From Octopus sinensis (lineage: Eukaryota): 64,000 nucleotides of DNA. How positions within the stretch are numbered: the first letter of the stretch is position 1; each line of letters opens with the position of its first letter. The stretch spans positions 11,718,001-11,782,000 of the forward strand of contig NC_043023.1 of assembly GCF_006345805.1 (NCBI RefSeq), given 5' to 3'. Made by a program: the position numbers and the translations under genes. This document shows positions 38,327 through 61,667 of the stretch, one piece after another. Below the pieces are notes generated by a model. That model was not told the DNA's origin, ran no database searches, and saw only the letters and a list, made by a program, of their open reading frames with translations.

Positions 38327-39816
38327 CAGCATGTTACATTCACCTTATTTTACTAATTAATCCTCATTTTATGTGCCTAAGAAATATACAGAATTTGTTG
38401 TCACAATTTTTTTCGGAGAAGTTCGAGTCCAGAAGAATTTCAGGTAAATTTTGATATTTTCACCCACAAGATTTTCATAAAGAGAAACAAAAAAATAACT
38501 CAGATTTTTTGCATGGAATCATGTACCCTGACCTCGCAGTGTGCTGCAAACTCCTTATTTTTGCTTGGAAAAAGTGGGGCAGACACCCCACCTCGGTATC
38601 ATTAGAAATATATATTTTTTACATTGGATGACGATGATGATGATGATATCATCATCATCATTTAGCGTCCGTTTTCCATGCTAGCATGGGTTGGACGGTT
38701 CTACTGGGGTCTGTGAAGCCAGAAGGCTTCATCAGGCCCAGTCAAATCTGGCAGTGTTTCTACGGCTGGATGCCCTTCCTAACGCCAACCACTCCGTGAG
38801 TGTAGGATGATATATTTATATATATATATATATATATATACACACATACACACATATATGTGTGTGCATACACACACATATATTTGAAGCACACAGCATA
38901 AACTCTATTAGGAGAATACACCCAAAGAAACCCAAACAAATCAGATTGGAACCTAGTGCAGCATTATGGTTTGCTAGCTCATGTCACACTGTGCCACCCA
39001 TGCCAGTAAAAAAAAAAAATTCACTAAAGGATGATGATGATAACAGCGACAATGATGAAAACACATAGACAAAATCAACTTCAGTGTAACCTTTTATTCG
39101 TTATTCCCATTTCTTTATTCTCTCATAACAAATTGCTCAAAAATCCAGAGCAATCATCTTCAGAAATCAAAGGCATTGTTGATATACTTCCATATATATA
39201 CATGACATTCATGAATTTGATGTTGAGATTATTGAAAATGAAGTCGATAACATCATATTTGAAGAGATAAAAATAGCCCTGTCTTTCAGCAGAAAAAAAT
39301 AGCCATAAATGTTGTAATAAAGATTAATCCTGAATGGTTGCACTTTTGTGTGAATACTCACATGTACTTAAATGGCGTTTTTGAGAGAATGATTTACCCT
39401 AGATATCACAGTGATATTGTTTTTCCCCCAGTATGAATATGCTTATAAATCAGAGAATGATTTACCACAGATATCACAATGATATGGTTTTCCCCATTAT
39501 GCATGCATTTATGTCTACGCAATTGACTACTTTGAGAGAATGATTTACCACAAATATCACAATGATATGGCTTCTCTCCTGTATGAATAGGTTTATGTTG
39601 AGTTAAATTGCTATTAAAAGAAAATGATTTACCACAGATATCACAACGATATGGCTTTTCTCCTGTATGAACACGCTTGTGCTTATTCAAGTGACCACTT
39701 ACAATAAATGATTTACCACAGATATCACAATGATATGGCTTCTCTCCTGTATGAATACGTTTATGTCGAGTTAAATTGCTATTAAAAGAAAATGATTTAC
39801 CACAGATATCACAACG

Positions 39817-41568
39817 CTATGGCTTTTCTCCTGTATGAACACGCTTGTGCTTATTCAAGTGACCACTTACAATAAATGATTTACCACAGATATCACAATG
39901 ATATGGCTTCTCTCCTGTATGAATACGTTTATGTCGAGTTAAAGTGCCATTATCAGAAAATGATTTGCCACAGATATCACAAGGATGAGGTTTCTCTCCT
40001 GTATGTGTGAATGTGTGTCGAGTCAAGGCAATCCTTTGAGAGAATGATCTACCACAGATATCACAATGAAATGGCTTCTCTCCTGTATGAACACGTTTAT
40101 GGACAGTCAAGCCACTATTCCAAGAGAAGGATTTACCACAGATATCACAATGATATGGTTTTTCCCGATTATGCATGCATTTATGTCTACGCAATTGACT
40201 ACTTTGAGAGAATGGTTTACCACAGATATCACAATGATATGGCTTCTCTCCTGTATGAATAGGTTTATGTTGAGTTAAATTGCTATTAAAAGAAAATGAT
40301 TTACCACAGATATCACAACGATATGGCTTTTCTCCTGTATGAACACGCTTGTGCTTATTCAAATGACCACTTTCAATAAATGATTTACCACAGATATCAC
40401 AATGATATGGCTTCTCTCCTGTATGAATAGGTTTATGTCGAGTTAAAGTGCCATTATCAGAAAATGATTTGCCACAGATATCACAAGGATGAGGTTTCTC
40501 TCCTGTATGTGTGAATGTGTGTTGAGAAAAGGCAATCCTTTGAGAGAATGATCTACCACAGATATCACAATGAAATGGCCTCTCTCCTGTATGAACACGT
40601 TTATGGACACTCAAGCCACTATTCCAAGAGAAGGATTTACCACAGATATCACAATGATATGGCTTCTCTCCTGTATGAATAGGTTTATGTCGAGTTAAAG
40701 TGCCATTATCAGAAAATGATTTGCCACAGATATCACAAGGATGAGGTTTCTCTCCTGTATGTGTGAATGTGTGTTGAGTCAAGGCAATCCTTTGAGAGAA
40801 TGATCTACCACAGATATCACAATGAAATGGCCTCTCTCCTGTATGAACACGTTTATGGACACTCAAGCCACTATTCCAAGAGAAGGATTTACCACAGATA
40901 TCACAATGATATGGCTTCTCTCCTGTATGAATAGGTTTATGTCGAGTTAAAGTGCCATTATCAGAAAATGATTTGCCACAGATATCACAAGGATGAGGTT
41001 TCTCTCCTGTATGTGTGAATGTGTGTTGAGTCAAGGCAATCCTTTGAGAGAATGATCTACCACAGATATCACAATGAAATGGCTTCTCTCCTGTATGAAT
41101 ACGTTTATGTTGAGTTAAAGTGCTATTGTGAGAAAATGATTTGCCACAGATATCACAATGATATGGTTTCTCTCCAGTGTGAACGCGCCGGTGTTTAGTT
41201 AAGATATAACTTCGAGAGAATGTTATACCACAGATACCACAATGGTATGGTCTTTCCCCAGTATGAAGACGTTTATGTCTAGTCAATAGACTATTACAAG
41301 AAAATGATTTGCCACAAATATCACAGTGATATGGTTTTTCCCCAGTATGAATACGTTTATGTTGAGTTAAAGCGCTATTATCAGAAAATGATTTACCACA
41401 GATATTACAATGATATGGCTTCTCTCCTGTATGAACACGCTTGTGAATAGTCAATTGACTCCTTTGAGAAAATGGTTTGCCACAAATATCACAATGATAT
41501 GGTTTCTCTCTTGTATTAGGGTTTTTAGGTTCAGTTGAATTATTCATTATGACAGGATAATTTGTCAT
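39817..41568 (-). CDS. ZNF-D1: 20-finger C2H2 protein (~583 aa), with 4 more in-frame fingers after the TAG
   Basis: First ATG 41568 (MTNYPVIMNNSTEPKNPNTREKPY); open to TAG 39819-39817; same frame continues to ~39490. Confidence 0.85.
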   Translation of the reverse strand: MTNYPVIMNNSTEPKNPNTREKPYHCDICGKPFSQRSQLTIHKRVHTGEKPYHCNICGKSFSDNSALTQHKRIHTGEKPYHCDICGKSFSCNSLLTRHKRLHTGERPYHCGICGITFSRSYILTKHRRVHTGEKPYHCDICGKSFSHNSTLTQHKRIHTGEKPFHCDICGRSFSQRIALTQHTFTHTGEKPHPCDICGKSFSDNGTLTRHKPIHTGEKPYHCDICGKSFSWNSGLSVHKRVHTGERPFHCDICGRSFSQRIALTQHTFTHTGEKPHPCDICGKSFSDNGTLTRHKPIHTGEKPYHCDICGKSFSWNSGLSVHKRVHTGERPFHCDICGRSFSQRIAFSQHTFTHTGEKPHPCDICGKSFSDNGTLTRHKPIHTGEKPYHCDICGKSFIESGHLNKHKRVHTGEKPYRCDICGKSFSFNSNLTQHKPIHTGEKPYHCDICGKPFSQSSQLRRHKCMHNREKPYHCDICGKSFSWNSGLTVHKRVHTGEKPFHCDICGRSFSQRIALTRHTFTHTGEKPHPCDICGKSFSDNGTLTRHKRIHTGEKPYHCDICGKSFIVSGHLNKHKRVHTGEKP

Positions 41569-59644: not shown

Positions 59645-61667
59645 ATATATCACAATAATATTGCTTTTTTCCTTTCTATGAATATGTTTGTGTTCATTTG
59701 CATCACTTTTTTAGAGAATAATTCAATGCTATGTTTCTTTCATCTGTGATCTTACTTAATACCTAAATCAACAGGTGAAAACTGTCAACTCTTTTGTAAA
59801 GTTATCCAAACTTGTAAAGCAATCACCTCCTCTACATTCCAGACAGTGAAGACAAGAAAAATATTCTGCTGTTGTTTGTCATAGATTATATTTATATAGA
59901 AACGTTGATGTATAGATGAAGGCTCCTTATAAATATATCGTCTTCATTAGTTGATGAAAGTTGATAAAAATATCAGAGGCACATCTGAATGAAGTAATTC
60001 CTTTTATGTCAACATGATGTGATATTCTGAAATAAAAAAAGAAACAGTAAGATAAAGAGGATAGTTAAGTGACATAGTAATTCAAGATTGTAAATATTAC
60101 AACATGAACACTGTCAGCCATTTAATGTCAAAGTTTACAGGGGTCAGAGTTCATTGAGGCGTTGAAACATTGGTATACCCACACAAGTTTACTACACACT
60201 TCACCTTTACCTTTCGGAAAAATGTTTGATTTAAGACTTCATGTTGCTGACCGGAATTCCCTTCTCTGGACCAGCTCGCTAGCTAGCCAGCAGTGAAGGT
60301 CCCTGTCTTCATGTTGTCTATGATGAGCCCATGGTCAGTGTCCTACACATCATTAGGTTCTTTTCGCTTTGACCGGCAGATTTTTAAAATAAATTCTATG
60401 TAACTAAACAATTTTAAACTTCCTATACTGGTAGAATGTGTTTATAAAGCATCTTTTTCTCTTGGCTTTCTTGAGAAAATTCTGTAGTTTGTAACATATT
60501 TGTTGTTTAATTTCTTGCATTTCGGCAATTACAACCAATCAAAGACGTCTATTGAGGCGAAAACGATTTCTGCCGTGACATTTACTGGCGGCGTCATATG
60601 AAAATGTCCCTGTTTTTTTATGAGAAAAAAGATACCCTTCGGTTATAAACTAAGGGTTCACTCGTAAACAGAGCTGGATAACAAAAGCGTTCCCTCTTTA
60701 GTGTTCACTAATAATTATGACCCTAGTATCGATCTATTGCATTTCAATCTGTTTTAGCGTTAGGGTTAGGGGCAAAGGTATCTTTTTTTCTTCAGAAATC
60801 TAAATAAACCCAATCTGTTTCTTAAACGAATATATATGTAACAGGGACGTTTTCGTATAACGCCGCCAGAAATCGTTTTCACCTCAATAAACGTCATTGA
60901 GTGGTTGAAATTGCCGAAATGCAAAATATTAAACAACATATATGTTACAAACTACAGAATTTTCTCAAGAAAGCCAAGAGAAAAATATGTTTTTTAAGCA
61001 CATTCTACCAGTATACGAAGTTTTAAATTTTATAGTTACATAGAAATTATTTTAAAAATCTGCCAGTCAAAGTGAAAAGATCGCATCATTACTCTCAAAC
61101 TTCAAATCACATCAAGGTCGCCTTTCATCATTTCCAGGTAGAAAAATAAGAAGCAATCAAGTACTAGGGTCCATGTAATTCACTTATGCCTTCCCGCCAA
61201 TTTTCAGGTCAAAAGCACAAATGATTATTGTCTTAATAATCAAAAGATTACTATTATCATCATCATTTTTATTTTCTTCACACGGAATGGAATGAAATAC
61301 AAAGCCAACCTCGGCGGAAAGTCCTGAGTTCAAATACGGATGAGATCGACTTTGTCTTTCATCTCTTCCGGGAAAAAACCGGGACCCATGCAATCGACTT
61401 GTCGCTCGCATTAAACATTGCTCACCCTGGGCCAGTTTTCAAATCATCATCATCATTACTATTATTAATATAACATTAGAGTAAATCTTTATCAACTTAC
61501 CGTTTTATCAATGCCTCATAAACAACAGGATAACATATATTAATGTGGAATTCTTCAATCGGACTCCTCACATTCTACTAATTAATTACGCTGTTTTATT
61601 CTCACTTTACCAATTAATTTCAGTTCTATCGCATGTAACAGTCGGTCATAGTATTTTATAAACAACA

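Follow-up and report, generated by a model that had tools for sequence, protein, structure and literature searches.

A 64,000-nucleotide stretch of the Octopus sinensis genome (RefSeq assembly GCF_006345805.1, contig NC_043023.1, positions 11,718,001 to 11,782,000; hereafter the window, with positions counted from its first letter) carries three minus-strand arrays of C2H2 zinc fingers, D1, D2 and D3, which an earlier reading made from the letters alone (the sequence-only reading) had described as near-identical gene copies undergoing PRDM9-like combinatorial shuffling of their fingers. The window has a G+C content of ~36% and contains no N, in an assembly of 2.72 Gb. Tandem Repeats Finder (TRF) delimited the arrays as 84-bp repeats at 39452-41516 (24.6 copies), 48233-50633 (28.6 copies) and 57360-59592 (26.6 copies). 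Parsing in three frames with the pattern C-x2-C-x12-H-x3-H, together with TGEKP-type linkers and a 28-codon period, identified all three as Krueppel-type C2H2 arrays, and the D1 frame matched the Pfam families zf-C2H2 (E = 2.8e-102) and zf-H2C2_2 (1.2e-157).

The parse returned the finger counts given by the sequence-only reading, 24, 28 and 26. D1 comprises 24 intact fingers, with the first Cys codon at 41493 and the end of unit 24 at 39478, and a TAG interrupts its frame past 20 fingers; D2 contains 27 parsed fingers plus one with a Cys-to-Ser change (CDISGKSF), and D3 contains 25 plus one split by a 1-bp deletion, so that the zinc ligands are complete in 76 of the 78 units, these two being the exceptions. 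The earlier description of the finger content was also accurate. All three arrays open with the same four helices (QRSQLTI, DNSALTQ, CNSLLTR and RSYILTK), the iteration QRIAL-DNGTL-WNSGL in D1 includes a perfect 252-bp duplicate, and AKGDLTK occurs zero, one and two times in D1, D2 and D3, respectively (one of the D3 copies is the frameshifted unit). The block present in D2 and D3 and missing from D1 was likewise recovered; two DNGTLTQ units follow it, and its QSSQLCR finger has a near counterpart in D1, QSSQLRR, 3-4 mismatches apart. The positions of these and other features are collected in Table 1.

Table 1. Coordinates of the D arrays, the duplication that contains them, their lesions and further zinc-finger arrays in the window.
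Feature	Position	Strand	Description	Basis
D1 gene-like frame	39406..41568	-	24 finger units; conserved ATG 41566-41568 to family-type stop	
D2 gene-like frame	48188..50685	-	28 finger units; frame broken after unit 13	open reading frame list, finger parse, codon check
D3 gene-like frame	57315..59644	-	26 finger units; frame broken within unit 11	open reading frame list, finger parse, codon check
Perfect 252-bp tandem duplicate in D1	40570..41073	-	units 6-8 = units 9-11 (QRIALTQ-DNGTLTR-WNSGLSV); zero mismatches	
Five-finger block of D2	48848..49267	-	missing from D1	unit-level alignment
Five-finger block of D3	58143..58562	-	same as D2 block	unit-level alignment
Tandem duplication unit 1	38907..47688	.	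D1 downstream flank, array, upstream flank and 3.8-kb segment 43913-47688	masked self-BLAST, pairwise flank alignments
Tandem duplication unit 2	47689..56815	.	holds D2	masked self-BLAST, flank alignment
Tandem duplication unit 3	56816..61993	.	holds D3; truncated	masked self-BLAST, flank alignments
In-frame TAG, D1	39817..39819	-	linker after VSGHLNK finger (TGEKP*R)	codon-level check
Same in-frame TAG, D2	48515..48517	-	unit 25	codon-level check
Same in-frame TAG, D3	57810..57812	-	unit 21	codon-level check
Second TAG, D3	57642..57644	-	unit 23	unit alignment, codon-level check
Private 1-bp deletion, D2	49520..49530	-	AAGCCATAT to AAGCATAT (CC to C), linker of unit 13; frameshift	codon-level check, open reading frame break
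Private 1-bp deletion, D3	58716..58724	-	GATATCTGT to GATATTGT, unit 11 (extra AKGDLTK finger); frameshift	codon-level check
Second zinc-ligand Cys to Ser, D2	49004..49006	-	TGT to TCT, unit 20	finger parse, codon-level check
C2H2 array, other subfamily	1218-1996	+		
C2H2 array, other subfamily	22175-22402	-		
C2H2 array, other subfamily	24426-25938	-		
C2H2 array, other subfamily	32566-34262	-		

With the arrays masked, self-BLAST showed D1, D2 and D3 to be part of a tandem duplication (2.6 copies, unit length ~9.1 kb). The homology of the third unit stops at 61993, a clean breakpoint equivalent to positions 43912 and 53027 in units 1 and 2, and no fourth D-type copy, extra contig or haplotig was found genome-wide, which leaves the number of D-type copies at three. 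Between units 1 and 2, the segments 41524-47688 and 50641-56815 differ by 18 substitutions in 6157 aligned bp (99.71% identity), and the proximal 2.4 kb upstream of D1 and D2 are 99.37% identical; the upstream flank of D3 is 98.37% identical to that of D1 and 98.83% identical to that of D2, and the downstream flanks of D2 and D3 are 99.08% identical. Divergence along the duplicated unit is a mosaic that ranges from 0.08% to 6%, with private substitutions in every copy: the 3.8-kb inter-gene segment 43913-47688 differs from its copy at 53028-56815 at just 3 sites (0.08%), the 119 bp adjoining the array are identical between copies, and the distal downstream flank of D1 (38907-39329) is ~6% diverged from 47689-48111 and 56816-57238. 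Because of this mosaic, a single duplication cannot account for the locus, and several duplication or conversion events must have contributed.

To compare the arrays we split them into 78 units, computed all pairwise mismatches and then aligned them unit by unit. Finger order is kept among D1, D2 and D3, and the differences consist of in-register gains and losses of blocks together with a few patchwork fingers. True reordering of fingers was rejected because the unit-level alignment is collinear; the "different orders" of the sequence-only reading are block insertions and deletions in collinear arrays. D3 is missing five units of the D2 region 5-13, carries an additional AKGDLTK unit and has duplicated the two-unit block VSxHLNx-VNSTLTQ. 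Two of the patchworks can be read in the units themselves: D2 unit 6 matches unit 18 exactly over its last 64 bp and departs from it at four sites in the first 20 bp, and in D3 unit 5 (CNSNLTS) a segment of the helix matches FNSNLT-type fingers, the backbone being that of CNSHLTS.

Every difference in array length is an exact multiple of 84 bp, as the sequence-only reading had found, and in this sense the arrays do behave as a coding minisatellite. Its further claim, that they evolve much faster than their flanks, stands for structure and falls for base substitution. Any two arrays (~2.2 kb) are separated by at least 4-5 block events, whereas the 6.2 kb of flank contains five indels of at most 14 bp, the longer of which sit in AT microsatellites. 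The identity of matched units is 98.87% for D1-D2, 98.41% for D1-D3 and 98.86% for D2-D3, against 98.4-99.7% for the flanks. Since matched fingers are about as similar as the flanks, base substitution in the arrays is not accelerated, and structural change alone is faster. The block gains and losses and the patchworks form the pattern expected from unequal exchange and short conversion tracts between units, and we infer that these processes produced them.

The D genes belong to a larger family. Copies of the 2-kb upstream flank occur, at 86-93% identity, at 30 or more loci, mostly on the chromosome-scale contig that also contains the window (C27), in clusters at 8.0-8.6, 11.35-12.15 and 13.2 Mb. 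We fetched 14 paralogues and the nearest relative, L015, for comparison. The flanks of the 14 paralogues are 88-98% identical and finger 1 lies at a fixed offset from the flank, and their arrays of 6-22 fingers have different helices, with no helix series in common with the D arrays; nine have long open frames and five are disrupted. L015 is 86% identical to the D genes over the leader and the first five fingers and has 19 fingers. None of its helices occurs in the D arrays, and it was rejected as an outgroup for polarising changes for this reason. Conserved flanks, one main chromosome and divergent arrays together identify a lineage-specific clustered expansion of zinc-finger (ZNF) genes. An octopus lineage-specific C2H2 expansion has reportedly been described by Albertin et al. 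in 2015. Two other members, L003 and L009 (C27: 7.99 and 8.13 Mb), have upstream flanks that are 97.9% identical and arrays with almost no common helices, which suggests an exchange that brought together one gene's flank and another gene's array.

What sets the D arrays apart within this family is their internal homogeneity. Unit pairs with three mismatches or fewer number 21 in D1, 13 in D2 and 8 in D3, against 0-4 in the 14 paralogues elsewhere, although the median mismatch between units is 21/84 (~75% mean identity), the near-identical units forming sub-families. All units are distinct in two pairs of paralogues, which retained finger number and order although their flanks have diverged more than those of the D copies: the 16-finger arrays of L001 and L013, whose flanks are 97% identical, are the same in number and order of fingers, and L005 and L012, whose flanks are 90.5% identical, share 22 collinear fingers. 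Internal homogeneity would thus provide the substrate for in-register misalignment, a relation that fits all pairs examined, and the many near-identical unit pairs make homology-driven unequal exchange the probable source of the instability.

For the predicted products, we aligned the 215 bp preceding finger 1 in 17 genes (D1-D3 and the 14 paralogues). Indels of 1-2 bp occur upstream of a conserved ATG located 17-24 codons before finger 1, where the conserved reading frame begins, and from the second ATG (MNN[L/S]TEPKN…) to finger 1 the leader alignment contains no frame-breaking indel. The start codon most likely lies at the conserved ATG, and the product would then consist of a short leader (17-24 residues) with the fingers immediately behind it. 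In line with the earlier statement that no effector domain is present, the Pfam matches in the D1 frame were all of C2H2 type, with no SET and no KRAB, and no domain was found in ten inter-array open reading frames (ORFs of at least 70 aa, 6 kb upstream), a search that small upstream exons could escape. A genome-wide six-frame search for KRAB (PF01352) gave no match, which is weak evidence because control genomes likewise gave none. In a large protein database, the matches to the D1 frame and to an intact paralogue were dominated by vertebrate KRAB-ZNFs with the same linker words and yielded no gene model, and the 62-residue leader used as sole query had no match; an exact-sequence look-up of the D1 product returned no record, and Rfam had no match in the 38-64 kb part of the window.

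The coding status of the three copies is put in doubt by lesions, of which the sequence-only reading had mentioned only the 1-bp indels and missed the in-frame TAG stops found in all three. The shared TAG lies at the same linker in each copy (D1 unit 22 has TAT at the equivalent codon), and D3 has a second one because its stop-bearing two-unit block was duplicated. D2 and D3 each carry, in addition, a private 1-bp deletion that shifts the frame, and D2 has lost a zinc-ligand Cys and shows a G-to-D change in CDICGK. Single-base indels number 2 in 6157 bp and 3 in 2386 bp of flank, and the D2 and D3 arrays have one each per ~2.3 kb, so that their density in the arrays falls within the range of the noncoding flanks. 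The deletion of D3 (GATATCTGT to GATATTGT, read as CDIVVNHS, at ~58721) is also seen in fingers of two distant paralogues, L004 and L007 (C27: 8.09 and 8.14 Mb); it may have arisen more than once, have been spread by conversion or reflect a systematic error in polishing.

Codon changes between matched fingers tell a similar story. Nonsynonymous and synonymous changes (N:S) number 11:3, 9:3 and 14:2 in the three copy pairs, about neutral and close to the ~3:1 expected without selection. They fall on Cys, Gly and linker residues, with at most 2-5 on the codons of the DNA-contacting positions and no concentration at positions -1, 2, 3 and 6. With a TAG and a frameshift in each, the Cys-to-Ser change in D2 and an N:S of ~3:1, D2 and D3 qualify as probable pseudogenes; D1 could still be coding, for a protein of 20 fingers.

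A different picture emerges at the level of the family. In the collinear pair L005/L012, contact codons show a ratio of nonsynonymous to synonymous changes (pN/pS, calculated with the overall synonymous rate) of 1.13, which is not significantly greater than 1; the ratio is 0.36 in the rest of the helix and 0.22 in the backbone. Other paralogue pairs, in which finger orthology is less certain, gave 1.0-1.7 at contact codons and ~0.2 in the backbone, and overall the contact residues evolve at ~5 times the backbone rate at the family level. Within the D arrays, clusters of the same finger type have an N:S of 36:11. The excess of amino-acid change at contact positions that the sequence-only reading had proposed to look for is therefore absent between the three copies, is present among the finger types of their arrays, where 11 of the 36 nonsynonymous variants hit the four contact codons against 14% expected (p ~0.01), and at 1.13 in L005/L012 does not exceed neutrality significantly. 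A constrained scaffold with free or diversifying contacts, as is normal for zinc fingers, thus held in the family and in the recent past of D, and is not visible between the three copies.

Taking these results together, we consider it probable that D1-D3 are a young triplication of homogeneous arrays which change by exchange of units, and that the copies have been decaying since. According to this model, one member of a large, lineage-specific clustered family encoding fingers-only poly-C2H2 proteins (a leader of 17-24 residues, with the fingers directly after) would have been triplicated in tandem very recently, as judged from a flank divergence of ~0.3-1.6%. In the D lineage, the 84-bp units would have come to form a higher-order tandem repeat in which many of them are nearly the same. 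Such an array would readily undergo unequal exchange in register, or slippage during replication, as well as gene conversion over short tracts from finger to finger. Whole fingers would in this way be added, deleted and patched while the rate of base substitution stays at the level of the flanks. Given the TAG, the frameshifts, the loss of a ligand and the nearly neutral N:S, the copies appear to have changed as unconstrained DNA since the triplication. The proposal that the locus is an active generator of new DNA-binding specificities, possibly directed against the transposons of the region, fares poorly against the same lesions.

Several observations weigh against decay. In the finger-type clusters, the enrichment at contact codons is accompanied by a complete lack of variants in the codons of both His, the first Cys and the conserved Phe, the second Cys being the only ligand that changes, and these two features indicate that normal zinc-finger selection still acted on the D lineage until recently. 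D1 retains a 615-codon open frame with 20 intact fingers, and the fingers past its TAG are intact too. Members of the family normally end in a linker that has mutated (…TISL*); a further stop would therefore not have to abolish the protein's activity, and the TAG could simply set a new end. The counts of changes between copies are small (12-16 per pair), and 1-bp indel errors do occur elsewhere in the assembly: over leader and array, L001 (C27:12146900-12156899) and L013 (C10898:32400-42399) are separated by 8 gaps, mostly in A-runs, and a single mismatch in 1954 bp. The same two loci differ by 31 mismatches and 12 gaps over 2 kb of flank, the leader and 16-finger array being better conserved than the flank, and so many gaps relative to mismatches indicate a duplicate or haplotype contig whose indel errors were left uncorrected.

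These points can be assembled into the view that D1-D3 are functional and diversify rapidly under selection in the manner of PRDM9 or KRAB-ZNFs, perhaps against transposons, with the frameshifts being assembly errors and the TAG a new C-terminus or a stop that is bypassed. We judge this unlikely, although it would accommodate the nearly complete set of zinc ligands, the contrast between contact and backbone pN/pS in the family, the contact-codon enrichment among recently amplified finger types and a nearest relative as close as L015 without any helix common to the D arrays; published predictions of the motifs of octopus ZNFs, moreover, suggest that they match the consensus sequences of transposons (PMC10547256). 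Four units over the three copies have the TAG, which is hence not a random error, and both deletions lie outside the long homopolymers in which the demonstrable assembly errors are found, which weighs for real lesions. The indel-to-substitution ratio of the window flanks (~0.15-0.3) also resembles real divergence, and neither the lost ligand, the G-to-D change nor the lack of a contact-position excess between copies is what such a view would lead one to expect. A more extreme version, which we regard as highly improbable, holds that the locus is an actively hypermutable, PRDM9-like system with functional variation in copy and finger number, in which the UAG is a new C-terminus or a regulated stop and the frameshifts are again assembly errors. 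As an example, were adenosine-to-inosine (A-to-I) editing to turn UAG into UGG, the Tyr/Phe position of the linker would regain an aromatic residue, and isoforms of 20 and 24 fingers would result. Rescue of the stop by RNA editing was rated unlikely because two other arrays of the window have in-frame stops of other kinds at other positions (TAA at 1461 and TGA at 25735), and the stops resemble ordinary decay. Were the active locus real, the family would offer a natural system in which to measure the rate at which an invertebrate invents DNA-binding specificities without a known effector domain.

It is very unlikely, finally, that mis-assembly of the repetitive locus, or haplotypes placed in tandem, produced a false number of copies or of fingers; with haplotypes in tandem, the differences would be allelic or consensus errors. 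The perfect internal duplicate of D1, the segment 43913-47688 that is only 3 bases off its copy and the indel-rich duplicate contigs elsewhere in the assembly would all suit such an artefact. The three units, however, lie in one contiguous stretch without N or gap in the 64 kb, the mosaic of divergence with its private substitutions is unlike a simple haplotype duplication, unit 3 ends at a clean breakpoint, and the genome holds no additional D-type contig or haplotig.

The favoured reading, a young and probably decaying triplication, has clear points of contact with known systems. Like PRDM9 (PMC3890296), the D arrays consist of tandem 84-bp units, gain and lose whole fingers in register, contain hybrid fingers formed by exchange within an array and vary most at the specificity residues. 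The differences are equally marked: Pfam searches found no PR/SET, KRAB or SSXRD at the D locus, the comparison here is among tandem paralogues and not among alleles, the D units are ~75% identical on average with near-identical sub-families whereas PRDM9 arrays are near-uniform, and the D copies bear stops and frameshifts. The family also resembles the tetrapod KRAB-ZNF clusters (ZNF91 family) and the cyprinid FiNZ-ZNFs (PMC10547256) in its lineage-specific tandem clusters with conserved non-finger parts and hypervariable arrays, the duplication and loss of its fingers, the faster change of contact residues, the abundance of pseudogenes and a setting rich in transposons. Unlike in those families, no KRAB or FiNZ-like N-terminal effector was found, and the frame seems to begin 17-24 codons before finger 1. 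A further parallel is provided by the cephalopod (octopus) C2H2 expansions (PMC12513265), which likewise form large clusters of multi-finger genes; the family described here has at least 30 loci, mostly on one chromosome, in a repeat-rich genome of 2.7 Gb. That literature covers gene-level phylogeny and expression, we found no finger-level turnover analysis in it, and it still counts the link between ZNFs and transposons in cephalopods among the open questions (PMC12513265).

The locus is a clean and datable case, with three copies at less than 2% flank divergence, in which finger gain and loss outpaces substitution once an array has become internally homogeneous. The turnover runs here in seemingly unconstrained copies, which counsels caution against reading finger turnover in young paralogues as adaptive diversification. 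At the level of the family, a conserved flank and leader, wholly different arrays and the roughly fivefold contact rate fit the idea that fingers-only clusters of invertebrates evolve like the KRAB-ZNF clusters of vertebrates. The instability of the D arrays is real, yet of the ordinary kind to which repeats are prone, in a large gene cluster specific to the species.

The surroundings of the arrays contain several repeats. An element of ~730 bp with inverted arms of ~217 bp (~90% complementary) lies at 42284-43005, 51400-52120 and 60359-61080 and in the conserved upstream flank of every family member, and solo copies with 84-91% identity exist on other chromosomes; it resembles a foldback transposon or one of the miniature inverted-repeat (MITE) type, probably older than the expansion of the family. 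An interspersed repeat of ~0.8-0.9 kb is found in units 1 and 2 only (45600-46503 and 54720-55620), with matches at 88-93% on nearly every chromosome and 17253 first-look candidates genome-wide; it contains a 61-bp tandem motif that is also found at 19114-19322. To the left of the duplication, immediately outside it, lies a tandem repeat (38140-38325; 1.9 copies of 98 bp) with a telomere-like start, AGGGTTAGGGTT. Among the further C2H2 arrays, that at 32566-34262 has a 619-codon open frame, and the 91% identity between 24231-24706 and 32314-32792 indicates another duplicated gene pair.

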